In this document: piece after piece, positions 10,046 through 61,158 of the stretch
Position numbering within the stretch: the stretch's first letter is position 1
How the letters are laid out: the number at the start of each line of letters is the position of its first letter
Sequence record: NC_019410.1
Direction: 5' to 3' (one strand)
DNA: 64,000 bases
Position numbers and translations under genes: made by a program
Notes under the pieces: model-generated
Seen by the model: the letters and a program-made list of their open reading frames with translations, nothing else
Databases searched by the model: none
What the model was told of the DNA's origin: nothing

Positions 10046-10104
10046 CGTTGTCGTCGAAGGCCCTTCTAGCGAGTCGGTGTCAGGCTGTCAACACATGTCA
10101 GCCA
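10046..10104 (-). promoter_or_regulatory. repeated promoter-leader element
   Basis: TGGC-N9-TTGACA-N17-TAGAAG-..-CGACGACAACG-GGAGG; spacer contains CGAGTCG (GANTC). Confidence 0.85.
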
Positions 10105-10107
10105 AGA

Positions 10108-10719
10108 TCAGGCGGCGTTCGTCACCAGGGTTTCCAGGCGATCAAAGCCCAGATCGAGGCGACCCCACATCGACGAGGGCGTATGCGGCTTGACCACCTC
10201 GGTGAACCGCGCGCGCTCCTTCAGATACATGCGGGCCATGGGGATGTTCGGCTGGCCGGTCGCCGGGTCCTTGATCGAGGCCTCGACATTGGCGATCCGG
10301 TCGGCGAGCTTGAGGATGCAGGCCTTGGGGTGCTCGCCCAGCTTGCGATAGATGTCCTCGTTGCGGGCCTTGCGGTTGGGGCCAATGCCCGAGACCGCCC
10401 AGACCAGCGCTGCGACGTCCTCGCCGAACTTTTCCTTGATCATCTCCAGCCGCTGCTCGGGCGTCATGTCGAGATGGGTGTCCTCGATCACGTCGTGCAG
10501 CTTGGCGGCGGCCGTCCAGGTAAAGCCCAGGAAGCCGTAGTCGTCGAGGATGCGCTCGACCTTCTGGAGATGGTAGAGATAGGGCTGGCCGGCGTACTGC
10601 TGGTCCCCGTGGGCGGCGATGGCGAATTCCGTCGGGTCTTCCTGGCGCAGCGGCGCGCCCGGCGCCGTCGGAAGGCCCGTCAGGATGGAGGCGAGTTGGT
10701 CGAGCGAGGCGTCAGACAT
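10108..10719 (-). CDS. RelA/SpoT-type HD-domain hydrolase (small alarmone hydrolase / Mesh1-like)
   Basis: AHGDQ..AGQPY..H, LHDVIEDT, LKLADRIAN; no synthetase domain. Confidence 0.85.
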   Translation of the reverse strand: MSDASLDQLASILTGLPTAPGAPLRQEDPTEFAIAAHGDQQYAGQPYLYHLQKVERILDDYGFLGFTWTAAAKLHDVIEDTHLDMTPEQRLEMIKEKFGEDVAALVWAVSGIGPNRKARNEDIYRKLGEHPKACILKLADRIANVEASIKDPATGQPNIPMARMYLKERARFTEVVKPHTPSSMWGRLDLGFDRLETLVTNAA

Positions 10720-11125
10720 GGGGCTTCTCGGAGATCGGGGTGAAGACTTCCAGGCCGTCGACGATCTGCATCAGATGCGTCGGCGGGTGGGCGGGATTGT
10801 AGCGGATGTAGCCGGCGAGGCCGCCGTCGATCATCGCCCCGCCCCGCTCCTTGTAGTCGTGCCGGAAGCGCGAGACCAGGAATGAGCCGTCGGGCATCTC
10901 GATCGCCGAGAACTGGGCCTGTCGGATCGAGGCCGCCGAGGTGATGTAGAGCCCGCCGCCCAGCGGATGGGTGAAGAGCCCGAAGTAGTTGTCGTGGCCC
11001 TTCTCGCGATCCGGCGTCTCGGTGTAGAAGACGTGGAACGGCCCCTCGCGGTCGGGCAGGTCGTAATAGCCGACGTACTTGGCGTTGTAGTGCTTTTCGG
11101 CCCCGGCGATGTTGATGCTGCTCAT
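10712..11125 (-). CDS. phage hypothetical protein
   Basis: ATG overlaps HNH stop; SRFRHDY...MIDGG segment. Confidence 0.75.
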   Translation of the reverse strand: MSSINIAGAEKHYNAKYVGYYDLPDREGPFHVFYTETPDREKGHDNYFGLFTHPLGGGLYITSAASIRQAQFSAIEMPDGSFLVSRFRHDYKERGGAMIDGGLAGYIRYNPAHPPTHLMQIVDGLEVFTPISEKPHV

Positions 11126-11625
11126 GCGACCCTCAGGAATTCTCCCCAGGCGGGGAGGGCGTGCTTCAGATAGGCGGCGTGCGCCTCGTCCGGCGTCGTG
11201 TAGCACCCGAGATAGCGGTACACCCCGTTGATCGTGACCTGGGCCTGGAACGGCTTCGTCTTGCTCCGGCTCTTGGTCACGCCCTTGGGAAGCGCGCCGA
11301 CGTTCGGGCGGTTCACGAGGTTCTGGGACCGCGTCGCCTTCCGGAGGTTCTTGATCCGATTGTTGCGTCGGTTCAAGTCCTTGTGGTCGACATCGTGATC
11401 GGGCATCACCCCGTGGTGGATCGCCCAGGCCACCTTGTGGGCGGCGATTTGAATTCGCCGGCCGCCATAGGAGACCTTCATCACCCGATAGCCGTCCTTG
11501 GTCACCGAGCCGCAGCGCTTGCGGGACTTGGAGCCCCGCACGGTGATGGCGCCGGTGGCGGGATCGTACTTGTAGCGCGCCCGGAGGAAGTCGACCGGGA
11601 TCGAAAACTCTGCATCCCCCGACAT
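11122..11625 (-). CDS. HNH homing endonuclease with AP2-like C-terminal domain
   Basis: AHKVAW..HHG.MP..DVDHKDLNRRNNRIKNLR.AT.SQN; KGV...FQAQV..NG..RYLG.Y.TPDEAHAAY. Confidence 0.9.
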   Translation of the reverse strand: MSGDAEFSIPVDFLRARYKYDPATGAITVRGSKSRKRCGSVTKDGYRVMKVSYGGRRIQIAAHKVAWAIHHGVMPDHDVDHKDLNRRNNRIKNLRKATRSQNLVNRPNVGALPKGVTKSRSKTKPFQAQVTINGVYRYLGCYTTPDEAHAAYLKHALPAWGEFLRVA

Positions 11626-11629
11626 AGGA

Positions 11630-11869
11630 TTAGTCCTTCTGGGCGTGCCGCTTGAAGAGGAGGTAGAAGCCGTAGGCGACGAGCACCGGAATCCAGAGCA
11701 GGATCAGGGCCACGGTCTGACCGAGGGTCATGAAGAAGAACGCGGCCTTCCAGTCGTTGTTGTACTGGTTGTCGCGCACCGCGTGGACTTTCGGATAGTC
11801 GATCGCATAACGGTAGCCGGCCCGCGCGAGACCCAGCAGCATCCCGATGATGAAGTAGAGATCGGTCAT
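11630..11869 (-). CDS. small membrane protein
   Basis: Two hydrophobic segments, 79 aa. Confidence 0.7.
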   Translation of the reverse strand: MTDLYFIIGMLLGLARAGYRYAIDYPKVHAVRDNQYNNDWKAAFFFMTLGQTVALILLWIPVLVAYGFYLLFKRHAQKD

Positions 11870-11872
11870 GGC

Positions 11873-12139
11873 TTACTTCTCCGAGGCCTCGATCATCTTC
11901 TGGACGCCGGCGTTCAGCTTCTTGCGCAGGACCCAGAAGACCGGAATCCAGAACAGGGCGAACAGGCTGGCGGGCCAGAGGGCGCCGAGGACCAGACCGG
12001 TGATGAAGACGAACCAGCCGTAGATACCGAATTCGTCGAGGGTTCTGATCCCCACCTCGCGGACGAAGGTCGGGACGATGGTCGCGCCGGCGACCCACCA
12101 TCCGATGGCCAGGAAAAGGCCGACGAGCCAGTAGAACAT
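11873..12139 (-). CDS. small membrane protein
   Basis: Hydrophobic segments, 88 aa. Confidence 0.7.
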   Translation of the reverse strand: MFYWLVGLFLAIGWWVAGATIVPTFVREVGIRTLDEFGIYGWFVFITGLVLGALWPASLFALFWIPVFWVLRKKLNAGVQKMIEASEK

Positions 12140-13199: not shown

Positions 13200-13202
13200 G
13201 GC

Positions 13203-14435
13203 CTAGCCCTTCACGCAGAGGACTTGCTTGAGGGTGTGGACGATGTCCACGAGGTCCTTCTGGGCCTCCATGACCGCGTCGATGTCCTTGTAGGCCATCG
13301 GGATTTCGTCGATCACGCCGGCGTCCTTGCGGCACTCCACGCCCTCGGTGGCCTTGATCTGGTCCTCCAGAGTGAAGGTCGCCTTGGCCTGGGTCCGCGA
13401 CATCGTCCGGCCCGCGCCGTGCGAGCACGAGCAGAACGAGTCCGCATTGCCCTTGCCGCGCACGATGTAGGACTTGGCCCCCATCGAGCCGGGGATGATC
13501 CCGAACTGGTCCTTCTGCGCCGACACCGCGCCCTTGCGGGTCACGAAGACCCACTCGTCGAAGTGGAATTCCTTCTGGACGTAGTTGTGGTGGCAGTTCA
13601 CCGCTTCCTTGTCCGTCTTGAACGGCGGCAGGCCCGACGCCCGCATGGCCTCCAGGACCCGGACCATCATCATCTCGCGGTTGATCCGCGCGAAGTCCTG
13701 GCCCCAGGCGACGGCTTCCACGTAGTCGTGGAACTCCGGCTCGCCTTCGCAGAGCCAAGCAAGGTCCTTGTCCAGCGGCTTGCGCCCGTCACGGCGCAGC
13801 ATCATCTCCTTGGCCTTCTCGATGAAGATGCGGCCGATGGTGTTGCCGACGCCGCGCGAGCCCGAGTGGAGCATCACCCAGACGCGCTGATCCTCGTCGA
13901 GGCAGACCTCGATGAAGTGGTTGCCGCCGCCCAGGGTGCCCAGTTGGACCACGCTGTTGGCGTTCTTCAGCGCCGGGTACTTCTCGCAGAGCTTGTCGAA
14001 CCGCGCCTCCAGGCCCGAATCGACCCACTTGCGCAGGATCGAGTTGGGGATGCCGCTGCGCCCGTTCCAGCCGCCCGACGGACCCGGCCCGCCGTGCGGG
14101 ACGGCGTGCTCGATCAGCGAGCGAAGCTTGGACAGGCTGTCGGGGAGGTCCGACGCGGTCAGGCTGGTGCGGACCGCCATCATGCCGCAGCCGATGTCGA
14201 CGCCGACGGCGGCCGGGATGATCGCGCCCTTGGTCGGGATCACCGAGCCCACGGTCGAGCCGATGCCCATGTGGACATCCGGCATCAGGGCGACGTGCGA
14301 GTGGATGAAGGGCAAGGCCGCGAGGTTGTGGGCCTGGACCTGAGCCGGTTGCTCGAAGTTCACGCCGCGAACCCAGGCCTTGATCACCCCGCCATTCCAG
14401 CCGTTGATCTCTTCGTAATGGGTCTCGGCGGACAC
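13203..14435 (-). CDS. rtcB: RtcB RNA ligase
   Basis: MPDVHMG, VGVDIGCGM, GTLGGGNHFIE, LHSGSRG, NCHHNY, IPGSMG, SHGAGR, DEIPMAYK. Confidence 0.97.
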   Translation of the reverse strand: MSAETHYEEINGWNGGVIKAWVRGVNFEQPAQVQAHNLAALPFIHSHVALMPDVHMGIGSTVGSVIPTKGAIIPAAVGVDIGCGMMAVRTSLTASDLPDSLSKLRSLIEHAVPHGGPGPSGGWNGRSGIPNSILRKWVDSGLEARFDKLCEKYPALKNANSVVQLGTLGGGNHFIEVCLDEDQRVWVMLHSGSRGVGNTIGRIFIEKAKEMMLRRDGRKPLDKDLAWLCEGEPEFHDYVEAVAWGQDFARINREMMMVRVLEAMRASGLPPFKTDKEAVNCHHNYVQKEFHFDEWVFVTRKGAVSAQKDQFGIIPGSMGAKSYIVRGKGNADSFCSCSHGAGRTMSRTQAKATFTLEDQIKATEGVECRKDAGVIDEIPMAYKDIDAVMEAQKDLVDIVHTLKQVLCVKG

Positions 14436-14451: not shown

Positions 14452-14501
14452 GGTGTCGTGATTTACGACTTTTGACCATGCTCCTCGGACGGTGTCAACA
14501 C
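14452..14501 (-). promoter_or_regulatory. promoter-leader element (variant) for rtcB
   Basis: GTGTTGACA-N17-TCAAAA..CACGACACC..AAGGAG; lies inside the 3' end of the upstream ORF. Confidence 0.55.
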
Positions 14502-16969: not shown

Positions 16970-17019
16970 CGTTGTCGTCGGGCGTGACTTCTAGTTGGGT
17001 TCCTGGAGGCTGTCAACAC
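16970..17019 (-). promoter_or_regulatory. repeated promoter-leader element
   Basis: GTGTTGACA-N17-TAGAAG-..-CGACGACAACG-AAGGAG. Confidence 0.85.
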
Positions 17020-19017: not shown

Positions 19018-19075
19018 CGCTGTCGTGAGGGAGCTTGTACGGACTCATGCCGATGCTGTCAACACTCTAACGCCA
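19018..19075 (-). promoter_or_regulatory. repeated promoter-leader element
   Basis: TGGC-N9-TTGACA-N17-TACAAG-..-CACGACAGCG-AGAGGAG; GANTC in spacer. Confidence 0.8.
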
Positions 19076-22319: not shown

Positions 22320-22376
22320 GTTGTCGTCGCCCGCCTCTTAGGACAAGGCCGCAGCCTTGTCAACACATTCAAGCCA
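22320..22376 (-). promoter_or_regulatory. repeated promoter-leader element
   Basis: TGGC-N9-TTGACA-N17-TAAGAG-..-CGACGACAAC. Confidence 0.85.
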
Positions 22377-23751: not shown

Positions 23752-24082
23752 GGGCCTTCGCCTTTCTCGGGCGGTTCTCGTCCCACCAGACATGCCACTC
23801 GGCCTTGGTCATCCACGGCTGCTTGCGGCGGTCGTTATAGACCCCGAGGCCCTCGCGCGTGACCTGATAGCGCTTGGAGCCGCGCGTCATGAAGGGCAGG
23901 CGCTGCTCGGAGATCACGTAGCCGCGCTTCTCCAGCTTGGCCAGCGTCGCCGAGTGGTGCGAGCCGTTCGAGCCCCCGACTTCCATTGGCGTATGCCAGC
24001 GGATCGGCTCATCGCGGAAGGTTGGGATGAGACAGCCCAGAACCTCCCAGTCGCGGTCGGTGAGGGGACGCAGTCGGCTCAC
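23744..24082 (-). CDS. putative winged-helix protein
   Basis: HSATLAKLEKRGYV...YQVTREG. Confidence 0.65.
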   Translation of the reverse strand: MSRLRPLTDRDWEVLGCLIPTFRDEPIRWHTPMEVGGSNGSHHSATLAKLEKRGYVISEQRLPFMTRGSKRYQVTREGLGVYNDRRKQPWMTKAEWHVWWDENRPRKAKAHG

Positions 24083-24252: not shown

Positions 24253-24264
24253 CGAGGTCTCCTT

Positions 24265-24322
24265 CGTTGTCGTCATGCGGCTTCTAGGTCGACTTTGCCG
24301 GATTGTCAACACATTCCAGCCA
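24265..24322 (-). promoter_or_regulatory. repeated promoter-leader element
   Basis: TGGC-N9-TTGACA-N17-TAGAAG-..-TGACGACAACG-AAGGAG. Confidence 0.85.
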
Positions 24323-26159: not shown

Positions 26160-26217
26160 CGTTGTCGTCGAGGGGGTTCTAGCCGGCGACCGCGACCTTG
26201 TCAACACTCTCGCGCCA
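26160..26217 (-). promoter_or_regulatory. repeated promoter-leader element
   Basis: TGGC-N9-TTGACA-N17-TAGAAC-..-CGACGACAACG-AGGAGG. Confidence 0.88.
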
Positions 26218-27598: not shown

Positions 27599-28329
27599 GG
27601 CTCTCCCCCTGGTGTCGTTTCGGCGCTTCTAGCCCTCCCAAGCAGAGCCGTCAACACATCAGCGCCACGCCAGACCCAGGATAGGCTCAGAACGAGGTCG
27701 CGGTCCTCATAGGCGGCGCTGCGCCCGGTGATCACCTTGATCGCCGAGAGCGGGCCAAACCGCCAGAAGACGACCGTGCGCGAGTCGTTGCGGCCGGGCA
27801 GGTGCTCCAGCAGCACGCGACGCTTGATCGCGAGGTGGCGCTGTTCCTTGTGGAGGACCAGGGCGATCTTGCATGTCGGATCGGACCCGAACCACCGGCG
27901 CCAGTAGCCCGGATTGTCGATGTTCTCGTAGAGCCGGCCGATCCGTTTGCTGACCGGGCGCAGGCCCGGCTCGCGCCGGCGCACGCTGAGCGGCGGGAAC
28001 GTGCAGGGCGGCCACTCGGCGAGCAAGCTCTGGCGCAGCCGGCGAAATTCCCAGGCCGGCATGGCGTTGTCCTTGGTGTTGTTGCACGCCACGCAGGCCG
28101 CCGCCAGATTGCTCTCGTGGTTCGATCCGCCCTCGGCCTTGGCCTCCAGGTGCTCGATCGTCACTTCGTCGGGCTCCAGCTTGCCGCCACCCCGGCCGAT
28201 CCGCCGGCGATAGGCCATCTGCCCCGTGCAATAGGTGCAGAGGCCGCCCGCCTCCAGGAAGAGGCGGTGGCGGCGGTTCGGCGCGGCGGGCGGTAGCGGG
28301 TCCTGGACCAGCACCTCAGATGAGGACAT
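27595..28329 (-). CDS. HNH endonuclease
   Basis: CTYC...TIEHL.AKAEGGSNHESNLAAAC.ACNNTK. Confidence 0.85.
   Translation of the reverse strand: MSSSEVLVQDPLPPAAPNRRHRLFLEAGGLCTYCTGQMAYRRRIGRGGGKLEPDEVTIEHLEAKAEGGSNHESNLAAACVACNNTKDNAMPAWEFRRLRQSLLAEWPPCTFPPLSVRRREPGLRPVSKRIGRLYENIDNPGYWRRWFGSDPTCKIALVLHKEQRHLAIKRRVLLEHLPGRNDSRTVVFWRFGPLSAIKVITGRSAAYEDRDLVLSLSWVWRGADVLTALLGRARSAETTPGGEP
27611..27667 (-). promoter_or_regulatory. repeated promoter-leader element (variant) for the ACP gene
   Basis: TGGC-N9-TTGACG-N17-TAGAAG-..-AACGACACC; embedded in HNH 3' end. Confidence 0.75.
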
Positions 28330-30824: not shown

Positions 30825-30874
30825 CGTTGTCGTCACCCGCGACACTAGATGGTCGGAGGTGTGACTGTCAACAC
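30825..30874 (-). promoter_or_regulatory. repeated promoter-leader element
   Basis: GTGTTGACA-N18-TAGTGT-..-TGACGACAACG-GAAGGA. Confidence 0.8.
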
Positions 30875-32992: not shown

Positions 32993-33051
32993 GTTGTCGT
33001 CGAGGATGGCTTCTAGCCGGCCCAGGTCACGTTGTCAACACTCGACAGCCA
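32993..33051 (-). promoter_or_regulatory. repeated promoter-leader element
   Basis: TGGC-N9-TTGACA-N17-TAGAAG-..-CGACGACAAC-AAGGAGG. Confidence 0.88.
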
Positions 33052-35410: not shown

Positions 35411-35666
35411 AGGTGATCCTGTACGGGAGCCCGCCGACGCAGATTTTCCCGCGTCGGCCGTCGGCGGTGGTGAAGCGGAAGCCCTGGCGGTTCTTGGTGC
35501 CGGCGCAGGACCACCATGCGCGGTGGAAGCTGACGACCTCGGCGCCGGTGGCGCGCTCGACCAGATGTCGAGCGTGACGCCCCTCCCAGGTGTAGGCCCA
35601 GACCCCGATGGCGAAGAAGACCAGAGTCAGGGAGCCATAGACGGCCCCTTTGACATAGTCCTCCAT
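35397..35666 (-). CDS. membrane-anchored protein
   Basis: N-terminal TM segment, two Cys. Confidence 0.7.
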   Translation of the reverse strand: MEDYVKGAVYGSLTLVFFAIGVWAYTWEGRHARHLVERATGAEVVSFHRAWWSCAGTKNRQGFRFTTADGRRGKICVGGLPYRITYGRD

Positions 35667-36043
35667 CAGGCCGCCACGAGCCCGGTGATCACGTCGGTGA
35701 CGATGCGGCGTTTCTCGGCCGGCATGCCCGCCAGCGCCAGGATCGTCTTGGCGCCGATCTCGGCGACGGCGGTCTCGACGTCGGCCCGGCCGTCGGTCAG
35801 GAACGCCGGATCGTCGACCGGCGGATAGAAGTGCCCGATGTCCTTCTTCAGGAACTGGGCCGCCTCGTAGAGCTTCGAGGACGAGATGCGGTTGTGCCCG
35901 CGCTCGTATTTCTGGACCTGCTGGAAGGTCACGCCGATCGCCTCGGCGAGTTGGCCTTGCGAGAAGCCGGCCGTCTTGCGGGTGTCGCGCAACTTGCGCC
36001 CCACATAGACGTCGACGGGGTGCGGGGTCTTGTCGTCAGCCAT
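35666..36043 (-). CDS. XRE-family HTH transcription factor
   Basis: PHPVDVYVGRKLR..R...GFSQ..LAEAIGVTFQQVQKYERG.NRISSSKL; ATG 36043. Confidence 0.92.
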   Translation of the reverse strand: MADDKTPHPVDVYVGRKLRDTRKTAGFSQGQLAEAIGVTFQQVQKYERGHNRISSSKLYEAAQFLKKDIGHFYPPVDDPAFLTDGRADVETAVAEIGAKTILALAGMPAEKRRIVTDVITGLVAA

Positions 36044-37315: not shown

Positions 37316-37376
37316 TGTCGTTGTGTCGACATAAGCTCTAGCCGTGGTTTTCCGGCCTGTCAACACACAACCGCCA
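37316..37376 (-). promoter_or_regulatory. repeated promoter-leader element (variant leader)
   Basis: TGGC-N9-TTGACA-N17-TAGAGC-..-CGACACAACGAC-AAGGAGG. Confidence 0.82.
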
Positions 37377-41013: not shown

Positions 41014-41047
41014 GCACCAATGTCGCTGGCTTTCGAGTGTTGACAAG
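40999..41047. repeat. 16-bp direct repeat TTCGAGTGTTGACAAG (40999-41014, 41032-41047)
   Basis: Identical copies 33 nt apart at the strand switch. Confidence 0.9.
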
Positions 41048-41085
41048 TCCGGTGCTCGTCTATAGGGGAGACCGGGACGACAACG
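41027..41085 (+). promoter_or_regulatory. rightward promoter-leader element of the divergent hub
   Basis: TGGC-N9-TTGACA-N17-TAGGGG-..-GACGACAACG-AAAGGAG. Confidence 0.85.
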
Positions 41086-43299: not shown

Positions 43300-43554
43300 A
43301 TGCTGACCAAGGACGAGATCACCTTCGCGGGCCTGATCAAGGCCATGGAGGACGCCCGACGCACCGCCAAGGCGGCGGGCGATCTCGTCAGCACGGCCGA
43401 GATCGACCGCTGGTTCAAGGAACACGCGCCGATCATCCGGGAGGTCCGCGACAAGGCCGAGGCCGACGAATTCGACGCTGGCGCGAGAGTGTTGACAGCC
43501 TCTGAGGAAGGGGCTAAAGACACCCTCGACGACAGCGAAAGGAGCCTGCCTTGA
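43300..43554 (+). CDS. hypothetical protein
   Basis: 3' end runs through a promoter element. Confidence 0.65.
   Translation: MLTKDEITFAGLIKAMEDARRTAKAAGDLVSTAEIDRWFKEHAPIIREVRDKAEADEFDAGARVLTASEEGAKDTLDDSERSLP
43479..43537 (+). promoter_or_regulatory. repeated promoter-leader element
   Basis: TGGC-N9-TTGACA-N17-TAAAGA-..-CGACGACAGCG-AAAGGAG. Confidence 0.85.
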
Positions 43555-46612: not shown

Positions 46613-46671
46613 TGGCGCGAAAGTGTTGACAGCCTGAAGGGACTCCTCTACACCCACGCTCGACGACAACG
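46613..46671 (+). promoter_or_regulatory. repeated promoter-leader element
   Basis: TGGC-N9-TTGACA-N17-TACACC-..-CGACGACAACG-AGAGGAG; GANTC at 46641-46645 and 46603-46607. Confidence 0.85.
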
Positions 46672-49681: not shown

Positions 49682-50250
49682 TCGACCCGAAAGCCAAACT
49701 CGCTGACCAAGTCGCCGGCCTCGGCCGTGACGGCGCCCGGCTCTGCGCCGAGGTGCAGGAACGCTGCGCCAGCAACATCGCCGACTCCGTGCTGGAATTC
49801 GTCGCCGACGCCGAGACGATCATCGAGCGCCAGCAAAAACGCGTCGATGAACTCCAGGTCTCGACGGCGCGTCGGATGCACGTCGAGCGGGCCTATCTGC
49901 GGGTGATCCAGGAGTTCATCGCCGCCAAGCGCCTGCCGAGCCTGACGGCGTTCCATGACGCGGTCGGCATGCTCCAGGCCCAGACCGAGCAGATGAACGG
50001 CGACATCGAGCGGCTCGCGACCTATCTGCGCGGACTGGACCGGCGCGCCATGGACCCTAAGCTGAAGGACCTCGTGGAGCACCTGGACTTCTACATCTTC
50101 CACGAGTTGATGCGGAAGATTCACTACATCGAGCATTTCGTCCTGCGGGACGCCCGCCTCGCCCTGGTCAGCCTGACCGAGGCCGACTTCGGGCGGATGG
50201 GGCTGGGCGAGCGGCCCGAGCCCCCGGTCAGCCAGGACATGCCGTCGTGA
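49678..50250 (+). CDS. hypothetical coiled-coil protein
   Basis: Coupled overlap. Confidence 0.75.
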   Translation: MIDPKAKLADQVAGLGRDGARLCAEVQERCASNIADSVLEFVADAETIIERQQKRVDELQVSTARRMHVERAYLRVIQEFIAAKRLPSLTAFHDAVGMLQAQTEQMNGDIERLATYLRGLDRRAMDPKLKDLVEHLDFYIFHELMRKIHYIEHFVLRDARLALVSLTEADFGRMGLGERPEPPVSQDMPS

Positions 50251-50480
50251 TCGAGCACGTCTATCGTCGCGATCCGCGCGGGCGCGATTACGGGCTTCAA
50301 TGCCTGGACCTCGACGAGGCGCTGAAGATCGTCGCGGCCGAGAAGCAGGACTTCCTTCTGCGCTTGGTCGCGGTCCTGCACGAGAACAACCTTCTGCGCG
50401 ACGCCGACGTCATGGAACTGCTCGGCAGGGGCTGGGCGCTCGAACCCTATGATCTCCACTACAGCGACGACGACGATTAG
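50247..50480 (+). CDS. hypothetical protein
   Basis: Coupled overlap. Confidence 0.65.
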   Translation: MIEHVYRRDPRGRDYGLQCLDLDEALKIVAAEKQDFLLRLVAVLHENNLLRDADVMELLGRGWALEPYDLHYSDDDD

Positions 50481-50529
50481 GCGTTGACAACACTCTCGCG
50501 CCAACATAGAACCACCCTCGACGACAACG
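50481..50529 (+). promoter_or_regulatory. repeated promoter-leader element
   Basis: GCGTTGACA-N17-TAGAAC-..-CGACGACAACG-AGGAGG. Confidence 0.85.
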
Positions 50530-50540
50530 AGGAGGCTTCG

Positions 50541-50924
50541 ATGAAGCTCGCGACCCAAGACCGCACCGACCCGCGCCTGAACGCGCGCTATCGCCTCGCC
50601 AAGGCGGTGTTCTACTATGGCGGCCCGCACGAGTACCCGATCCACCTGAACGACTGGTGGAACGAGGTGACGCCGGCCGACGTCGAGGACCGCATCTCCG
50701 AACTCTGCCGCGAACTCTCCAAGCTGTCGGGTCAGACCCTGGCGCCGGCGACCTTCTACGAGCGGATGAAGCTGGGCTTCGTCGACCTCCCGGAAGTGAA
50801 GGACGAGGACTTCGCCACCCTGTCGGAGACGACCCGCAACAACCTGCTCGCCATGCAGGACCGCTTCTCGGTCCACGGGAGCGGCTTCATGCTCTACTGG
50901 AACATCGTCAAAGAGGAGGCCTGA
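50541..50924 (+). CDS. hypothetical protein
   Basis: ATG 50541 after AGGAGG (track start 50484 falls in the promoter). Confidence 0.8.
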   Translation: MKLATQDRTDPRLNARYRLAKAVFYYGGPHEYPIHLNDWWNEVTPADVEDRISELCRELSKLSGQTLAPATFYERMKLGFVDLPEVKDEDFATLSETTRNNLLAMQDRFSVHGSGFMLYWNIVKEEA

Positions 50925-50927
50925 GCC

Positions 50928-51287
50928 TTGGATCGCAACGACCCCGCCCAGCCCATGTGCAAGATCGCCGTCCTGGCCGGCCCCCTGTGGGAGGTCGATA
51001 CCGACAACTGCGAGACCCTGCTGGTCCCGATCAAGGACGTCCCGCACCCCTGCGCCGAGAACTTCCAGGACGAGATCGACATGGCCCTCAACATGAGCGG
51101 CGAGGCCATGGACTGGCGCCGCGTCGAGGGCTACGCCGCCGTCCTGCGCGATCCGCGCGGCGCGGACATGTCGCCCGTCGAGGGGCCGTTCGCGACCGCC
51201 GAGGAGGCTTTCGCCTACGTCAAGGACCAGTGGAGCGACCGCATCCCCGGCTCGATGGGGCTGGCGCCCTACGAGGCCCCGCAATGA
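50928..51287 (+). CDS. hypothetical protein
   Basis: TTG start after GAGGAGG. Confidence 0.7.
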   Translation: MDRNDPAQPMCKIAVLAGPLWEVDTDNCETLLVPIKDVPHPCAENFQDEIDMALNMSGEAMDWRRVEGYAAVLRDPRGADMSPVEGPFATAEEAFAYVKDQWSDRIPGSMGLAPYEAPQ

Positions 51288-51553
51288 TCAAGGTGACGCG
51301 CCGCATGACCTGGGCTGACGCCGGCCGCTGCTCCAAGACCGACTGGACCGCGTGGCTCATCCCCGCCGGCCCGCTGATCGCGGCGCTGCCGTTCGCCGCC
51401 CTGACCGGCGCGTGCCTGTCGATCAAGGACCCGACCCACACCAATCTGGCCATCGCCTTGCTGCCCGGCGCGGCGATGCTCTTCAACGGCTGGATGGCGA
51501 CGTTCGCCTTCGACCAGTTCCTGCGCGGGCGGGCCGGCGAGGAGGTCCGCTGA
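51284..51553 (+). CDS. small membrane protein
   Basis: Two hydrophobic segments. Confidence 0.7.
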   Translation: MIKVTRRMTWADAGRCSKTDWTAWLIPAGPLIAALPFAALTGACLSIKDPTHTNLAIALLPGAAMLFNGWMATFAFDQFLRGRAGEEVR

Positions 51554-51554
51554 C

Positions 51555-51983
51555 ATGAAGCTCTTCATCATCATCCTGGCGGCGATCCTGTGGCTGGGCG
51601 ACACCGCCCGCGCCCAGTCCCTGCCGTTCCGCCTGACCCAGCCGCTGAACTACGGCAGTGATCTCCACTACACCGAGACGCGCGACGCGTCCGCCTCGCG
51701 CGAGCCGCTCAAGCGGGTGATCGTCGACCTGTCGCGCTCGTCCACGGTGGTCATCGAGCGGGCCTGGACCTATGCCGAACTCGCCGGCGCCCAGACGACC
51801 TGCGGCGAGATCGTCCTCAACGGCCGCCGTCAGAGGTTCGTCCTCCAGGAAGGCCCCAAGACCGCCGTGATCGGCCCGGCGGTGCCCGCCTACTTCTGGT
51901 CGCTCGACGTGCCGGACTACCAGTTCCGCAACGCCGGATGCCTGCGCGACCGCGCCGCCCTGATCATCCCGCCGAGGTTCTGA
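51555..51983 (+). CDS. putative secreted protein
   Basis: MKLFIIILAAILWLGDTARA signal peptide. Confidence 0.75.
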   Translation: MKLFIIILAAILWLGDTARAQSLPFRLTQPLNYGSDLHYTETRDASASREPLKRVIVDLSRSSTVVIERAWTYAELAGAQTTCGEIVLNGRRQRFVLQEGPKTAVIGPAVPAYFWSLDVPDYQFRNAGCLRDRAALIIPPRF

Positions 51984-51986
51984 TCC

Positions 51987-52044
51987 TGGCGTTCTTGTGT
52001 TGACAAGGCCAGCGCCGCTGGCCTAGAACGTCGTGGACGACAAC
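51987..52044 (+). promoter_or_regulatory. repeated promoter-leader element
   Basis: TGGC-N9-TTGACA-N18-TAGAAC-..-GACGACAAC-AGGAGG. Confidence 0.85.
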
Positions 52045-52054
52045 AGGAGGGACC

Positions 52055-52411
52055 ATGCCGCTCTACGACTTTCCGACCGGACCGACCACGATGGCGGACA
52101 TCGAGGCGTTCGTCGCCGGCGCCCAGGCGGTGGTGACCGCCCAACTGGCCAAGGCCTTTCCCGGCGTGTCCGCGCCGGTCCTGGAGATCGCGCCGGTTCA
52201 CCCGAGCAGCCAGTTCGCCAAGATCGTCGCGGTCGACGCCAGCCAGCGCTCGGCCTGGGCGTTCGTCCGACTGGAGAACGGCCTGATCTACAAGCCCTCG
52301 TCGTGGAAGGTGCCGGCCAAGCATGCGCGTGGCACGATCCACACCGCCGCGCACGGCGCCGAGTACGTCGACTGGACCGGCCCGCGCTACGTCAAGGACC
52401 TGCGTCGATGA
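52055..52411 (+). CDS. phage hypothetical protein
   Basis: SAWAFV..ENG.IYKP.SWK.PAKHARG.I...WTGP.Y. Confidence 0.8.
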   Translation: MPLYDFPTGPTTMADIEAFVAGAQAVVTAQLAKAFPGVSAPVLEIAPVHPSSQFAKIVAVDASQRSAWAFVRLENGLIYKPSSWKVPAKHARGTIHTAAHGAEYVDWTGPRYVKDLRR

Positions 52412-52674
52412 GGAACTTCTCCGTTCTCCTGTCGCTGCATGACGAGCGCCGCCTCTACGTGGTCGAGGCGTCGGACCCCGGCAAGGCGGTGGCCTTCGCC
52501 AAGCGCGTGGCGGCGGCGCACGACACCGTCGGCTCCAACTGGGAGATGGAAGTCGTCTTCCACGGCGCTTCCTACCTCGCCATGAAGGGCGCTTCCGTCA
52601 AGGTCATCGATCTGCGCTCCAGCGCGCAGGAACAGGAACCGGTGCCGCACGCTCAGCGTGGGAGTGGTTGCTGA
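52408..52674 (+). CDS. hypothetical protein
   Basis: Coupled overlap. Confidence 0.65.
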   Translation: MRNFSVLLSLHDERRLYVVEASDPGKAVAFAKRVAAAHDTVGSNWEMEVVFHGASYLAMKGASVKVIDLRSSAQEQEPVPHAQRGSGC

Positions 52675-53087
52675 TGCGCGTCGAGGACGGAAAGGCCATC
52701 GTCGATGACGTCTGGGCGGTGGTCAAGGGCCACCTGCCCGGCGCCATCCATTTCGTGCGCCTCAATTGGGTCGGTCGCCTGCTGCACGGTGGCGACATGC
52801 TCCACTACTGGGGCATCCAACAGCCGACCCAGATTCCTGGCGTCGCCTATGTCTGGGACGACGAGACCAACGATGGCCCGCTCGGCGGCTGGATGGGTCC
52901 GGAGACCAAGATCATCGCCCGCTTCGCCGACCAGCGCCAGGGCCTGGACGTCCTGCGCGCGGCGATGGAGACCAAGGCGCGCTTCGACGCCCTGGTCCGC
53001 CAGGGCGAGGACTTGCTGCTCGCCCTCAAGGCCCAGCGTGACCAAGCCCTGTTCGCGGCCTTGACCCAGGGGGTTCCCGAGGCATGA
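52668..53087 (+). CDS. hypothetical protein
   Basis: Coupled overlap. Confidence 0.7.
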   Translation: MLMRVEDGKAIVDDVWAVVKGHLPGAIHFVRLNWVGRLLHGGDMLHYWGIQQPTQIPGVAYVWDDETNDGPLGGWMGPETKIIARFADQRQGLDVLRAAMETKARFDALVRQGEDLLLALKAQRDQALFAALTQGVPEA

Positions 53088-53494
53088 GCTTTGCGATCCG
53101 CTACTTTCCCGGCCCGCGCCTGGGCTATGGCAAGGTCGTCTCCCGTCACGGGCGTCACGTCCTCTTCCAGGCCTATGCTGGGAACGATCCCCAGCCGGGG
53201 ACCCTGCCCGAGGTCGTTCACTGGGACGACATCATCGAAGGTCGCTTTGCCTCGGTCGCCAAGGTCATCCTGGCGATCGACGAATCCATGCGCTGGTTCA
53301 AGGCCCTGGAAGCCGAGCGCGGCGCCGAGCAGTCCGCCGAGGTCCTCATGACGCATCTGCGGCGCTATGAGCGCGACGACTGCGAGGTTTGCCACGGCGC
53401 GCGCGGCGGGGTGCGGGGCAACGAGAACATCGTCGATGGCAAGGTGGTCTGTGACTACTGCACCATGGACATCCTCGACGCGAGGAAAAGCTGA
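53084..53494 (+). CDS. hypothetical protein with C-terminal Zn ribbon
   Basis: CEVC.GARGGVRGNEN.VDG.VVCDYC. Confidence 0.75.
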   Translation: MSFAIRYFPGPRLGYGKVVSRHGRHVLFQAYAGNDPQPGTLPEVVHWDDIIEGRFASVAKVILAIDESMRWFKALEAERGAEQSAEVLMTHLRRYERDDCEVCHGARGGVRGNENIVDGKVVCDYCTMDILDARKS

Positions 53495-53715
53495 TGGGGG
53501 CCTACGCCTACTGCCAGAACCCCGACTGCGGCGCGCCGCACGATCGCCCGTCGGCCCGTGAGGTCGTGGAGCGCGAGCGGCGCTGCTACGCCTGCGGGAA
53601 GGACGTCCCGGTCTATGACGATCTGGCCGACATCCTCGAACGGATGGAGGGCCGGATCGACGATCTGGAAGCCGAGGTCAAGGCCCTGAAGGGAGAGACC
53701 GATGGGCCTGCGTAA
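53494..53715 (+). CDS. Zn-ribbon protein
   Basis: CQNPDC...CYAC. Confidence 0.7.
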   Translation: MGAYAYCQNPDCGAPHDRPSAREVVERERRCYACGKDVPVYDDLADILERMEGRIDDLEAEVKALKGETDGPA

Positions 53716-54058
53716 AATCCCGCCGCGCTCCTCCTGGTGGATGGGCTATGCTCTCAGCACGGCGTTCAAGAAGCCCTCGCACGAGGAGCGGATCGCCCGG
53801 CTGCGCGCCGTTCAAGGGCATAGGCTCTCGGGCGCCCAGATGCGCGACCCACTCATGAAGAAGCTGGTGCGCGAGGGCCTCGTGCGCCTGCATCGCTCGT
53901 CGAACGCCGAGCATTACAAGAGCGCCCGAGGCGGCTTCATGAAGTCCACCGAGGCCTATCTGACGCCGGCCGGCGAAGCCTATCTGGCGGACCCGACGCC
54001 GCATCACGTCCCGAAGTCCGAGCGGACCGAGAAGACCAAGGGGGTGCGGGGCAAATGA
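53702..54058 (+). CDS. hypothetical protein (wHTH-like)
   Basis: LMKKLVREGLV...YLTPAG. Confidence 0.65.
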   Translation: MGLRKIPPRSSWWMGYALSTAFKKPSHEERIARLRAVQGHRLSGAQMRDPLMKKLVREGLVRLHRSSNAEHYKSARGGFMKSTEAYLTPAGEAYLADPTPHHVPKSERTEKTKGVRGK

Positions 54059-54453
54059 CCGCGACCCGCCAAGAGATCAAGGACGTCCTCGACCGCGTGG
54101 CGAACCTGCGCGAGCCTGACCGTGAGGTCGAGCTTGCCGTCTGGAACATCGTCAGCACCCAGGGGCGCTGGGCGTGGCACACCCATCATGAGACGATCCA
54201 CCAGATCGCCAGCGATGGGCGATATGGCTACGGCATCTGCTCGCTGGAGCGGCTGACCTCGTCGATCAACGACGTGTTGTCGTTCGCCCACTATGCCGAT
54301 CTCCATTCCCTCGAACTCCTGGAGAAGGGTCTGGCGCGGGTCAAGTTGCTTCCGCGTCATCTCTACGACCAGGACTACGACGTCCAATTCTTCTTTTGCC
54401 GCGACATGCTCATGGTGATCCTGGAGCATTGTCTTGAGAAAGCCAACGCATGA
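54055..54453 (+). CDS. hypothetical protein
   Basis: Coupled overlap. Confidence 0.7.
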   Translation: MTATRQEIKDVLDRVANLREPDREVELAVWNIVSTQGRWAWHTHHETIHQIASDGRYGYGICSLERLTSSINDVLSFAHYADLHSLELLEKGLARVKLLPRHLYDQDYDVQFFFCRDMLMVILEHCLEKANA

Positions 54454-54839
54454 GCTTCGTCTATCTTGCGATCCCCTACACCTCCCAACTGGAGGACGAG
54501 GCCGAAGCCAAGGCCGAGCGCGACGCCCGAATGGTCGAATTCTGGAAGGCCGCCGCCTTTCTGATCGACCGGGGCGATCACGTCGTCTCGCCCATGACCC
54601 TGGAGCCGGCCCTGGTCGCCGTGCCCGACATGCCCTACCGCTGGGAGCACTGGAAGGAATACTCGATCAAGATGATCGGGATTTCGTCGAAGCTGGTGGT
54701 CCTGCAACTGCCCGGCTGGTCGACCAGCCGGGGCGTCATCGGCGAGATGCACGCGGCGGGCGAAGCCGGCATCGAGATCGAGTTCCTGACCCTTCAGACG
54801 GTCGCGACGTGGTTGAGCACCAGGGAGATTGAAGCGTGA
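54450..54839 (+). CDS. DUF1937 / nucleoside 2-deoxyribosyltransferase-like protein
   Basis: VYLAIPYTS, VVSP, W..W, LVVLQLPGWSTSRGV..E. Confidence 0.75.
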   Translation: MSFVYLAIPYTSQLEDEAEAKAERDARMVEFWKAAAFLIDRGDHVVSPMTLEPALVAVPDMPYRWEHWKEYSIKMIGISSKLVVLQLPGWSTSRGVIGEMHAAGEAGIEIEFLTLQTVATWLSTREIEA

Positions 54840-55291
54840 TCCAGTTCCTCAAGGACATCACGGGCGTCACCGCGCGCGCCGAAGCCCTGGAGCGCGCAAA
54901 AGCCAAGGCCCTGCATGCCAATCAGTTGGCCCAGGCGCGCAAGGTCGGGGAATTTCAGGTGGTGCAGGAAGACCGCAAACTCTTCCACTATCAACTGTTT
55001 CTCACCCCCTCCACGCTCGACGGGTCTTGGTTTTACCTGGGGAGCTACGGCCACATCTGTAGCCGGGTCAACGCCCACTCCTTCTCGTCTCTGGAAGAGG
55101 CCAAGGTGGCGGGTGCGGCGGCGGGCGCTCAATGCCGCGAGCGCATCGCCGGCGAGATGGAGCGCCAGCAGCAGTTCCGCAATATCTACGCCCCGCCGGA
55201 GTTCCTGGCCAAATCCGTCAACGCCTTCAAGTCGAGTGAGGACCTGCTGATCGAGGTCGCGCGGACGGTGTCCCAGAGGTACCAGCGATGA
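54836..55291 (+). CDS. hypothetical protein
   Basis: Coupled overlap. Confidence 0.65.
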   Translation: MIQFLKDITGVTARAEALERAKAKALHANQLAQARKVGEFQVVQEDRKLFHYQLFLTPSTLDGSWFYLGSYGHICSRVNAHSFSSLEEAKVAGAAAGAQCRERIAGEMERQQQFRNIYAPPEFLAKSVNAFKSSEDLLIEVARTVSQRYQR

Positions 55292-55554
55292 GCGCGGTCG
55301 CTCTGAAGTTCGACACGCTCGCCGACGCCGAGATGGCGGTCGCCCAGGCGCTCTATGAGCACTGGGTGCGGAGCGAGCGCGCCCGTCATGTCACCTGGAA
55401 CATCCCCGGCTGGGTCGAGCCGCCCGCCTGGGCGGACATGAACTGGACCGAGCGCACGCACTGGCTGGTCGAGGCCGGCCTCGTCGTCGACTGCCTGCTC
55501 GAATTCGTCAAGAACAACCCCGGCGCCTATGGAGAGAGCCATGAACCGTCGTGA
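55288..55554 (+). CDS. hypothetical protein
   Basis: Coupled overlap. Confidence 0.7.
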   Translation: MSAVALKFDTLADAEMAVAQALYEHWVRSERARHVTWNIPGWVEPPAWADMNWTERTHWLVEAGLVVDCLLEFVKNNPGAYGESHEPS

Positions 55555-56161
55555 ACTGATCCTGGGCGCCGGCGCGGTCGTCGCGGCCTCGGCCCTGCCG
55601 AGCGTGGTCGAGGCCGCGCGCATCGAGCCCATTCGACGCTTGCTCCTGGAAAGCGGCTTCGTCCAGCACGAGACCTTCGCCACCTCTTGGATGGCGATCT
55701 GGACGGAAGACTCCCACGCCTCGCGGCATGCCGAGGTCGTCCGGGCCTGGATCGACGAGACGGTCCAGAGCGGCTATCTCAAGTGTGGCGGCGAGACCTA
55801 CATCCTCGATAAGCACGTGCGGCTTCCGCAGGTGGACTTCACGATCTCCCCGGCCGACAAGGTCTGGTCGCACTGGTCGGGCTGGGTCGAGGAGGCAGGG
55901 CTGAAGGTCGTCGTGCGCGTGCTCGCGTCCGATCCCCAGGTCGATGCGACCTTCGATCCGGTCTATCTGATGAAGACCCGCTGGCAGACCGACGGGACCC
56001 AGGCTCCGGAGGAGACTCGCTACCTCGTCCGCCGGCCGCTCCTGCGTTACCACGAGGAACGCGAGCTTCGCTACGCCCTCGGGGACACCGCCGGCTACTC
56101 GCCGAACTCGTTGGTCGAGTTCGACAATGGCTGGCTTCTCGACATGGCGAAAAGCGCATGA
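55541..56161 (+). CDS. protein with twin-arginine-like signal peptide
   Basis: MNRRELILGAGAVVAASALPSVVEAA. Confidence 0.7.
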   Translation: MNRRELILGAGAVVAASALPSVVEAARIEPIRRLLLESGFVQHETFATSWMAIWTEDSHASRHAEVVRAWIDETVQSGYLKCGGETYILDKHVRLPQVDFTISPADKVWSHWSGWVEEAGLKVVVRVLASDPQVDATFDPVYLMKTRWQTDGTQAPEETRYLVRRPLLRYHEERELRYALGDTAGYSPNSLVEFDNGWLLDMAKSA

Positions 56162-57363: not shown

Positions 57364-57364
57364 C

Positions 57365-59689: not shown

Positions 59690-59696
59690 ATTTTGT

Positions 59697-59755
59697 TGGC
59701 GTTAGAACGTTGACAGCCTCGGCGTGATGTCATAAAAGCCTCCTCGACGACAACG
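59697..59755 (+). promoter_or_regulatory. repeated promoter-leader element
   Basis: TGGC-N9-TTGACA-N17-TAAAAG-..-CGACGACAACG-AGGAGG. Confidence 0.88.
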
Positions 59756-59766
59756 AGGAGGGCCAC

Positions 59767-60186
59767 ATGGCTTACGCAATTCCGGACCTGAGCACGTTCA
59801 CGTTCCACGATCCCAAGGTCGAACGGTTCGCCAAGGCGATGATCTCGACGATCGAGACCGCCCAGACCATCCTCACGGCCTTCGCCAACGATCTCGCCGA
59901 CAATCCTCTTCAGGCGTTCGAGCATAGCTACGGCGCCAAGATGGCCGCCGCCCACAGGGACGTCGCCAAGGGGCTGCTCAACGAAGTCCTCGACGCGCTG
60001 CTGCACGGTCAGGACAAGACCTGGGCCTACATCGGCCAGGACCTGCGCGAGCGGCTGATGTATCGCGTGATCTACGCGGCCTCGAACCCGCCGCGCTCGA
60101 CCAACGTCGAAGGCAACGACATGGCCCGCTTCGTCCTGCGCGCCGAGGCCGACATGCTCGACCGCATGACCAAGAGCCGCTTCTGA
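59767..60186 (+). CDS. hypothetical protein
   Basis: First gene after promoter. Confidence 0.8.
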   Translation: MAYAIPDLSTFTFHDPKVERFAKAMISTIETAQTILTAFANDLADNPLQAFEHSYGAKMAAAHRDVAKGLLNEVLDALLHGQDKTWAYIGQDLRERLMYRVIYAASNPPRSTNVEGNDMARFVLRAEADMLDRMTKSRF

Positions 60187-60500
60187 TGCGGATCGTCGAC
60201 TTCGCGACGTTCGTGACGCTTCCGGCTGGGACCCTCTACCAGGAGATCGACCAGTACGGGAGCCCCATCAGCGCCCTGGCGATCCGCCACGACGTGCTGT
60301 TCGACGGCGATCGCCCGTTCGACTTCATCTACGAGGAAATCCTCTACCAGACGGCCGACGGCTTCCTGGGCGACCCGCCGAAGCTGGCCGAGTTGGGGAC
60401 CAAGCGCTGGGGGCTCTTCGATGACGAGACCCTGTTCATCGTCTACGAGACGCAGGACCGCGCCCGGCTGGCCAAGATCATCCTGGGAGACGCCGCATGA
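60186..60500 (+). CDS. hypothetical protein
   Basis: Coupled overlap. Confidence 0.7.
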   Translation: MRIVDFATFVTLPAGTLYQEIDQYGSPISALAIRHDVLFDGDRPFDFIYEEILYQTADGFLGDPPKLAELGTKRWGLFDDETLFIVYETQDRARLAKIILGDAA

Positions 60501-60880
60501 AGTCGCTCGACGAACGCATCCGCGACGCGATCGACACCCCGCGCCCGGCCTGGATCGAGCGCGTTGGGAGCCGCTATCAGGTGATCACCAAGGGCGTGCT
60601 GTTCCCGAATACGCGCAACCCGGTCGGCAAGACCTGGGCGCTGCGCTCTGGCGCCCTGACCTACATCCGCCAGCAGTATCTCACCCTGCTGGAGGGCGAC
60701 TGCCCGCTGCCGGCCGCGACCCAGGAGCAGCGCGACGCCTACCAGAACGAAGGGCGCGAGCGCCGCGCCGTCGTCGAGCAGTTGGCGACGGAACTGGATC
60801 GGCCCTACACGGACGTCTGGCGCGTGGTCCGCGACCTGGAAGCCCAGGGCCTGCTCCGCTTCGAGGAGGCCCGCCCATGA
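60497..60880 (+). CDS. hypothetical protein
   Basis: Coupled overlap. Confidence 0.7.
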   Translation: MKSLDERIRDAIDTPRPAWIERVGSRYQVITKGVLFPNTRNPVGKTWALRSGALTYIRQQYLTLLEGDCPLPAATQEQRDAYQNEGRERRAVVEQLATELDRPYTDVWRVVRDLEAQGLLRFEEARP

Positions 60881-61098
60881 CGCCGCAGACCCAGAGGACC
60901 TTCATCCTGTCCGGCGTGGGCTTCTTCCTCGGCTTCCTGCTGGTGTTTGGCCTCATGAGCGCCACGCAGGCCTCCTACAACCGAGGCTATCGAGACGCCA
61001 AGGCCGACACGCGCCGGGACGAGCCGGCATGCTTCGTCACCGAGCGCTGCTACCTGGGCCAGGACGCCGACGGGCGGTGGTTCATCGAGCCGAAATAG
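60877..61098 (+). CDS. small membrane protein
   Basis: N-terminal TM segment. Confidence 0.7.
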   Translation: MTPQTQRTFILSGVGFFLGFLLVFGLMSATQASYNRGYRDAKADTRRDEPACFVTERCYLGQDADGRWFIEPK

Positions 61099-61099
61099 T

Positions 61100-61158
61100 T
61101 GGCGTTCAAGTGTTGCCAAAGCTGATCTGATCAGCTAGAACCCTCGCCGACGACAACG
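61100..61158 (+). promoter_or_regulatory. repeated promoter-leader element
   Basis: TGGC-N9-TTGCCA-N17-TAGAAC-..-CGACGACAACG-AGGAGG. Confidence 0.85.

Follow-up and report, generated by a model that had tools for sequence, protein, structure and literature searches.

The DNA analyzed here is a 64-kb window that corresponds to positions 124001-188000 of the Caulobacter virus Karma record (JX100811.1; 100% identical). Karma is a phiCbK-like giant siphovirus of the Dolichocephalovirinae, and the subject of this analysis is a nonamer, GACGACAAC, that recurs in the leaders of its genes and is called the tag hereafter. The window contains 13 exact copies, against a chance expectation of 0.56 ± 0.69 with a maximum of 3, and none of 100 dinucleotide-preserving shuffles reached 13. 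An earlier inspection of the letters without database searches (the sequence-only reading) had reported a conserved repeat of this kind, and it was borne out by these counts; its 13 exact-copy starts were correct within 1 nucleotide (nt), and its five variants (CACGACACC, CACGACAGC, AACGACACC, GACACAACGAC and GACGACAGC) were all found in the window. The strand of every exact copy is that of the gene direction, minus up to 33 kb and plus from 41 kb, flipping at the divergent point near 41 kb. The copies are listed below in window positions, each with the energy of its predicted duplex with the seed of a small RNA (sRNA)-like unit described later.

10047..10055, minus strand, exact tag in the gp170 leader (start 10030); -35 at 10086-10091, -10 at 10063-10068; seed duplex -29.2 kcal/mol
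16971..16979, minus strand, exact tag in the gp185 leader (start 16958); -35 at 17011-17016, -10 at 16988-16993; seed duplex -23.7 kcal/mol
22320..22328, minus strand, exact tag in the gp195 leader (start 22303); -35 at 22358-22363, -10 at 22335-22340; seed duplex -26.8 kcal/mol
24266..24274, minus strand, exact tag before an ATG at 24252 within annotated gp199; -35 at 24304-24309, -10 at 24281-24286; seed duplex -26.7 kcal/mol
26161..26169, minus strand, exact tag in the leader of gp203, ArdC-like (start 26148); -35 at 26199-26204, -10 at 26176-26181; seed duplex -27.2 kcal/mol
30826..30834, minus strand, exact tag in the gp216 leader (start 30813); -35 at 30866-30871, spacer 18, -10 at 30842-30847; seed duplex -21.5 kcal/mol
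32993..33001, minus strand, exact tag in the gp220 leader (start 32980); -35 at 33033-33038, -10 at 33010-33015; seed duplex -25.3 kcal/mol
41076..41084, plus strand, exact tag in the leader of gp236, head of the first rightward operon (start 41099); -35 at 41040-41045, -10 at 41063-41068; seed duplex -26.0 kcal/mol
46662..46670, plus strand, exact tag in the gp251 leader (start 46684); -35 at 46626-46631, -10 at 46649-46654; seed duplex -28.0 kcal/mol
50520..50528, plus strand, exact tag in the gp258 leader (start 50541); -35 at 50484-50489, -10 at 50507-50512; seed duplex -29.2 kcal/mol
52036..52044, plus strand, exact tag in the gp262 leader (start 52055); -35 at 52000-52005, spacer 18, -10 at 52024-52029; seed duplex -20.8 kcal/mol
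59746..59754, plus strand, exact tag in the gp280 leader (start 59767); -35 at 59710-59715, -10 at 59733-59738; seed duplex -25.0 kcal/mol
61149..61157, plus strand, exact tag in the gp284 leader (start 61169); -35 TTGCCA at 61113-61118, -10 at 61136-61141; seed duplex -27.2 kcal/mol
14452..14460, minus strand, variant tag CACGACACC in the leader of gp180, RtcB-like (start 14435); weaker seed duplex, -17.5 kcal/mol
19019..19027, minus strand, variant tag CACGACAGC in the gp188 leader (start 19004); seed duplex -22.5 kcal/mol, co-fold gain with the sRNA -12.5 kcal/mol
27611..27619, minus strand, variant tag AACGACACC in the leader of gp208, acyl carrier protein (GTG 27598); seed duplex -15.7 kcal/mol, co-fold gain -12.2 kcal/mol
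37317..37327, minus strand, variant tag GACACAACGAC in the leader of the gp230-gp229-gp228 operon, the element lying directly after a terminator; -35 at 37358-37363, -10 at 37335-37340; seed duplex -20.7 kcal/mol
43528..43536, plus strand, variant tag GACGACAGC in the gp245 leader (TTG 43551); seed duplex -26.1 kcal/mol

A further GACGACAGC at 1847-1855 (minus strand), preceded by a weak promoter-like site, overlaps the gp156 start codon (ATG ACG ACA GC); as a probable coincidence it was not counted as an element. The annotated start of gp199 (24079-24369, minus strand), at 24369, lies upstream of a complete tagged promoter, and because an in-frame ATG at 24252 with a strong Shine-Dalgarno (SD) sequence comes after the tag, the annotated gene is probably 39 codons too long.

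Each copy belongs to a composite element spanning about 65 bp, with the tag on the 3′ side. The parts of this element are, in order, YTGGCK, 4-6 nt, (A/T)GTG-TTGACA, N17 (sometimes 18), (C)TAGAAS, 6-7 nt often terminating in CCTC, the 9-mer, 0-5 nt, a strong SD and the start codon, which is found 10-17 nt past the tag. Among 41 elements of Karma and of Rogue, a phage of another genus, the -35/-10 spacer was 17 in 33 and 18 in 8, and the distance from the end of the -10 to the tag was 6-7 nt in 36. The SD core followed the tag by 0-5 nt. With 6-8 nt between -10 and tag in the window, the sequence-only reading was right to place the motif shortly after the -10 box and just before the SD. The position of the tag in the 41 elements was tighter relative to the -10 (standard deviation (sd) 0.79) than to the start codon (sd 1.63), and the information content per position of the 9-mer equaled that of the -35 hexamer. 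One spacer, ACACTCTCGCGCCAACA, is identical in three elements (window 50484-50512, plus strand, and Karma record 188923 and 191530) and differs in all others, a sign of recent promoter duplication or conversion.

The published consensus of the Caulobacter RpoD (sigma73) promoter is TTGaCgS for the -35 and GCtANAWC for the -10 (PMC8144410). TTGACA and GCTAGAAC of the element, which reads (GTG)TTGACA and (GC)TAGAAS, match this consensus. The first T of TTGAC in mapped Caulobacter promoters lies at -35 to -37 from the transcription start site (TSS) (PMC4287350 dataset S4), and the elements agree with this host geometry, including its 16-18 bp spacer. Because the first G of the tag (G1) sits 35-36 nt past the first T of TTGACA, the predicted +1 of the transcript is G1 (±1), and the tag would span +1 to +9. 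The location at the mRNA 5′ end given in the sequence-only reading stands as a predicted placement, derived from the consensus match and the host TSS geometry.

We then considered the distribution over the whole Karma genome. It contains 19 exact copies of GACGACAAC, of which 18 are in promoter context, all promoter-proximal and confined to 114.9-195.4 kb of the record, a region of small genes without known function. The tag is absent from the approximately 138 other GGAG..ATG sites. These numbers bear on one function offered in the sequence-only reading, an unstructured A/C-rich translation enhancer, which could work by helping 30S subunits to load where leaders are very short. Enterobacteria are known to use enhancers rich in C and A, and the tag is C/A-rich, U-free and directly 5′ of a strong SD; moreover, exact-tag leaders fold weakly alone (-0.6 to -6.9 kcal/mol). 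However, composition alone does not require nine invariant letters, and the 9-mer recurs without a single changed letter more than 40 times in two phage genera, whereas the other SD-start sites of the genome are untagged. In addition, a 32-nt perfect hairpin separates the tag from the gp296 SD at Karma record 191566-191625 (plus strand), and this element (Karma 191530, Rogue 192573) is conserved with the tag retained at the predicted 5′ end despite the intervening hairpin. A simple enhancer function coupled to the SD is therefore very unlikely.

The surroundings of the tag also suggested a structural explanation, in which the tag is the loop of a hairpin whose stem is formed by a CCUCC-like discriminator and the SD, so that read-through transcripts would have a masked SD. 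The tag is flanked by CCTC on its 5′ side and GAGG on its 3′ side in many copies, and two loci have 10-bp stems that are annotated as terminators. When arms were swapped between elements, however, the own arms were no better than the swapped ones (P = 0.39 for Karma and 0.12 for Rogue), and the upstream arm is predicted to lie before +1. This explanation was rejected and has almost no probability in our estimate. The two annotated loci (window 10036-10063, minus strand, and Karma record 188951-188978, plus strand), where the tag lies inside a 10-bp hairpin followed by TTTT, cover the promoter +1 region and the SD of the next gene, and may serve both as terminators and as leader sites.

The tag marks one promoter class of the host sigma73 type. 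This class is probably the early class, as judged from one gene, tgrL, and from gene content. The tgrL orthologue in the window is

35666..36043, minus strand, gp228, orthologue of phiCbK tgrL (gp216); the cloning primer of PMC10688885 matches exactly at 36026-36043

and is the third gene of the gp230-gp229-gp228 operon, which has the variant tagged promoter. In phiCbK, tgrL is a strongly expressed early gene whose expression peaks 15 min after infection (PMC10688885); its location in a tagged operon therefore ties one such operon to early expression. The early region also contains NAD-salvage enzymes (nicotinate phosphoribosyltransferase and NUDIX; 4936-7622, minus strand), an RtcB-like RNA ligase (13203-14435, minus strand), which is the gene with a variant tag noted above, and a peptidyl-tRNA hydrolase (8093-8524, minus strand). 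Such a combination typically counters defences that work by depleting NAD or cleaving tRNAs.

A second sigma73-type promoter family (class II) has GTCGTGAATC abutting TTGACA, N17 and TAGGGT or TAGGTT, and belongs to the structural and replication modules. Its sites are at Karma record 30599, 56915, 71946, 94142 (minus strand), 116276, about 206310 and about 87060 (minus strand); none was found within the window, and class II promoters have no tag block at +1. The GTCGTGAATC motif includes GAATC, a GANTC (CcrM) site, which suggests control of class II by methylation and by the phage GcrA-like protein encoded at window 40228-40776 (minus strand).

The one exact copy outside promoter context was informative. 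It is located at Karma record 53150-53158, in the minus-strand reading, inside an unannotated sRNA-like unit on the plus strand (53071-53204) in the tRNA cluster, outside the window. The unit has no open reading frame and sits in a non-coding gap. It consists of a promoter of the tagged type (class I; CTGGCG, GTG-TTGACA, N17, TAAAAC), a 5′ hairpin, the stretch CUUCUGCGUUGUCGUC, and a terminator with a strong hairpin and U-rich tail that is annotated as such in the record. It thus represents an independent non-coding unit with its own promoter and Rho-independent terminator, and the same layout was found in Rogue, Colossus, Bajun and Kikimora. The sRNA promoter itself has no tag in Karma, and likewise in the Colossus and Bajun units. 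A scan of Karma record 50001-56000 against Rfam 15, whose families include antisense RNAs of phages, gave only tRNAs and chance-level hits, with none over 53071-53204.

The predicted transcript of about 98 nt would expose the exact antisense of the tag, which runs on into the antisense of the SD. The occurrence of GUUGUCGUC in this unit is the only one in the Karma genome that is not merely the opposite strand of a leader. The unpaired stretch CUUCUGCGUUGUCGUC can form 9-10 bp with the tag, one mismatch, and 5-6 bp with the SD; with GACGACAAC-GAAGGAG or GACGACAAC-GAGGAGG this gives a 16-nt duplex with one mismatch. The predicted folds of the Karma, Rogue, Colossus and Bajun sRNAs all consist of a 5′ stem-loop, an open seed and the terminator. 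When the full Karma sRNA was co-folded with real leaders, the seed-tag-SD duplex formed and the terminator stayed intact, with a net gain of -19 to -24.5 kcal/mol for exact tags (-24.5 kcal/mol for the gp185 leader) and about -12 kcal/mol for variants. By these predicted folds and energies, the seed is accessible and complementary to several targets near the ribosome-binding site (RBS).

We next compared the unit and the tag among relatives. The unit is conserved in all 26 records of the phiCbK/Rogue clade, and at 77-82% identity (BL57, CcrBL10 and Rogue) the 16 nt TCTGCGTTGTCGTCAG are invariant while the letters of spacer, discriminator and hairpin vary. The order of last tRNAs, unit, class-II-type promoter and PhoH cluster is kept in all lineages examined but CcrSC, and the class II motif comes after the sRNA terminator in Karma, Colossus and Bajun. 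Rogue, about 77% identical to Karma where alignable, has 22 elements with the identical 9-mer, although their spacers and discriminators differ from those in the orthologous Karma elements.

Colossus, a phage of the same host species as Karma, has leaders with a different block, tGACGATCA (GACGA in 16 and GACGATC in 10 of 26 promoters). From these leaders, the Colossus seed was predicted to be UGAUCGUCA before the Colossus unit was examined. The syntenic sRNA reads UGAUCGUCA, as predicted. This unit (record about 69436-69583) is placed after tRNA-Arg, at the annotated terminator 69544-69574 and before the PhoH cluster, and its open stretch CCUCCUGAUCGUCA is the exact antisense of UGACGAUCA plus GGAGG. 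The chance of finding the 9-mer within a 25-nt stretch is about 3 × 10⁻⁵. In the Brevundimonas phage Bajun the element has the same architecture with a looser block, RACGAC followed by variable letters, and the unit (8781-8931 of the piece examined) has CCGUCGUCAG and an anti-SD CUCC, matching the predominant ACGACG leaders. As read from these sequences, the core GACGA is common to the subfamily and the 3′ half is lineage-specific. Seed and target are therefore conserved and co-vary in the phiCbK/Rogue clade, Colossus and Bajun. In IMG/VR the exact Karma-type composite was confined to Karma, Rogue, CcrBL10 and three contigs of uncultivated viruses (3300001199_000001, 3300030106_005634 and 3300049192_000016), and loose patterns for the Kikimora-type and Colossus-type composites returned only scattered single chance matches there.

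The specificity of pairing was determined with leaders picked by the promoter and SD pattern only; whole-sequence scans of duplex energy were unsuited to picking targets, since the background is too high in DNA of 66% GC. The mean energy with the cognate seed was -24.2 kcal/mol for Karma, -26.9 for Rogue, -22.1 for Colossus and -23.0 for Bajun, the strongest values being on the diagonal, whereas foreign seeds gave means of -17.7 to -22.8 kcal/mol. Shuffled seeds gave -11 to -13 kcal/mol, and none of 300 reached the cognate value (z = -5.5 to -7.4). The other GGAG..ATG sites gave -14.6 to -16.7 kcal/mol with the seeds. Perfect complements of at least 8 nt were found in 17/25, 20/22, 11/24 and 7/15 leaders with the cognate seeds and in 1-10 leaders with the foreign ones. 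Two off-type +1 blocks at class-I-type promoters, GACGGTCAC (window 62338-62380, plus strand), which resembles the Colossus form, and GACGGAGACAATC (8040-8088, minus strand), pair poorly with the Karma seed (-18.6 and -13.1 kcal/mol), and their operons may escape the sRNA.

Other readings of the tag were considered and dropped. For helix 34 of 16S rRNA (the CUGUCGUC stretch), the majority form of the tag would be mismatched and the rarer GACGACAGC perfect, the Colossus tag is a poorer fit, and chance alone should produce a 7-nt match within a 1.5-kb rRNA about once in 10 cases. NAD capping and the ARN motif of Hfq were set aside as well because the known consensus rules do not fit the sequence.

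The same comparisons can be used to weigh an explanation at the level of transcription, in which the tag is a start-site element in the initial transcribed region, read by the host RNA polymerase (RNAP), that fixes the start at G1 and aids escape from a near-consensus, tightly bound promoter. The complementarity to the sRNA would then be secondary. A U-free tag would form a stable RNA-DNA hybrid, and most copies have a pyrimidine before G1, in line with the known Y(-1)R(+1) preference at transcription starts. The tighter spacing to the -10 than to the start codon, the retention at +1 when the SD is distant, and a GACGA core common to phages of two host genera all fit as well. However, the class II and sRNA promoters are of the sigma73 type in the same phages and have no tag, and the 3′ half is different in Karma and Colossus although both infect one host species. 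The conserved UCGUC core of the seeds accounts equally well for the shared GACGA, and from a polymerase optimum one would not expect a matching, co-varying antisense RNA. We consider this explanation rather unlikely as the main function, but a role of the GACGA core in start selection or promoter escape could coexist with that of the sRNA.

The tag could also be a DNA operator at +1, through which a phage repressor shuts off early transcription. It overlaps the start site, occurs in one promoter class only and has lineage-specific variants, and the early region encodes several helix-turn-helix and winged-helix proteins. The tag has no dyad symmetry, however, no candidate protein was tied to it, and the only co-varying partner found is an RNA. 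An operator, which could likewise coexist with the sRNA, therefore seems very unlikely.

The explanation that we favor, and hold with some confidence, is that the tag is a 5′-terminal address for a trans-acting anti-leader sRNA of the phage, which would occlude the SD in early messages. By computation, tag and predicted sRNA are complementary, and this complementarity is conserved and co-varies between lineages; from these observations the sequence of events would be as follows. The promoter would give every early message an identical 9-nt 5′ tag at +1 to +9, and the anti-tag of the predicted sRNA would nucleate pairing at the accessible mRNA 5′ end. The adjoining anti-SD would then cover the RBS and block 30S binding, so that translation would stop and the mRNA would probably be exposed to decay. 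One sRNA may thereby turn down about 25 early operons together. Internal RBSs of the phage would be ignored, as they have no tag, and host mRNAs are presumed to have none either. Expression of the sRNA, the block or decay at the RBS, and joint silencing of the operons are predictions from sequence, and the result would be a global, self-specific brake on early gene expression, with its direction and timing likewise inferred.

Among the three functions offered by the sequence-only reading, a self-mark recognized by a phage factor came closest to this picture. The factor indicated is an antisense sRNA instead of a protein, and as the complementarity extends into the SD, it would probably silence early mRNAs of the phage itself instead of sparing phage messages during host shut-off.

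Several observations weigh against such an address. Retention of the tag at +1 when the SD is 40 nt away, together with its tight -10 spacing, would also fit a transcription-level role. There is a single sRNA gene, whereas the target promoters number about 25 and are predicted to be of like strength and class, and stoichiometric silencing needs an sRNA that is more stable or longer expressed than the early mRNAs. In Kikimora, which has an sRNA-like unit (about 1795-1650, minus strand, of the piece examined), 50 kb of early-like sequence was sampled; its 12 promoters did not share the predicted tag GACGATAGA, and in the same sample the cognate pairing (-16.8 kcal/mol) was no better than that with a foreign seed (z = -2.2). 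In CcrSC the syntenic position is without such a unit. With tag and seed in common, Karma and Rogue make up a single lineage here, and the co-variation rests on three lineages; structural co-variation inside the sRNA was weak, with one compensatory pair.

Extended to the Dolichocephalovirinae as a whole, the early-to-middle switch might operate by RNA addresses. Lineage-specific 5′ tags and a single anti-tag/anti-SD sRNA would silence the whole early regulon post-transcriptionally and spare host and later phage messages, with tag and anti-tag co-evolving. This generalization is tentative, and we rate it as possible. If it is correct, related phages that share a cell would not regulate one another.

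Explanations of temporal control in lytic phages have relied almost wholly on proteins that modify or replace RNAP, or on nucleases. A virus sRNA recognizing a 5′ tag that promoters supply to about 25 operons would solve the problem in another way, globally, cheaply and with specificity for the phage's messages, and the joint change of tag and sRNA in relatives suggests that a single sRNA can reach a large group of viral genes together. Such a system would also explain why the 9-mer is so strictly kept in two genera, and it would give a function to the gap without annotation that every phiCbK-like genome has in its tRNA cluster. The system is accessible, since phiCbK is a standard tool in work on a model bacterium for which good genetics and RIL-seq are available, and the tag/anti-tag pair could become a portable device for synthetic gene control in Alphaproteobacteria. 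Neither papers on the genomics and transcription of phiCbK nor a review of phage sRNAs from 2025 (PMC12197685) mention the promoter class, the tag or the sRNA, and literature searches on the motif, the -35 flank and a phiCbK sRNA returned nothing relevant.

Parts of this arrangement resemble known systems. The c4 RNA of P1 and P7 is a phage antisense RNA acting in trans on its own mRNA near the RBS (PMC12197685), as predicted here. Unlike the present case, c4 serves the immunity of a temperate phage, acts at two sites in one operon and is processed from the same transcript; here the phage is lytic, a common tag marks about 25 separate operons, and the sRNA unit is equipped with a promoter and a terminator of its own. 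The sequence-only reading had drawn an analogy with the start-associated sequences of cluster K mycobacteriophages, which are likewise short conserved sequences repeated before many phage genes. Those sequences overlap the RBS at a fixed distance from start codons and occur also at genes inside operons. The analogy fails on position and distribution, since the tag precedes the SD by 0-5 nt at a variable 10-17 nt from the start and was found only behind promoters (18/18 in-context copies).

Early promoters of T4 and T5 show conservation beyond the -35 and -10, and their initial transcribed region affects escape. They are similar in being a phage-specific class for host RNAP with extra conserved blocks upstream and at +1 to +10, but these blocks are A/T-rich and are interpreted at the DNA/RNAP level; we know of no RNA complementary to them. 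GcvB, an Hfq-dependent enterobacterial sRNA, uses a G/U-rich seed to reach many mRNAs whose C/A-rich elements lie at the RBS or upstream of it. The predicted system shares with it a single trans-encoded sRNA, a G/U-rich unpaired seed, a C/A-rich leader element beside the SD and occlusion of the RBS. It differs in that the regulator and all targets are viral and the element is invariant, at the very 5′ end and tied to one promoter class; the Karma unit has no sequence relation to GcvB and no Rfam match. In purpose, the closest parallel is the T4 RegB endoribonuclease, which cleaves GGAG in the SD of early mRNAs. Both would be phage devices that inactivate many early messages at the RBS and sharpen the early-to-middle switch, but RegB is a protein nuclease with a 4-nt target, whereas here a 9-nt tag would be read by base pairing.

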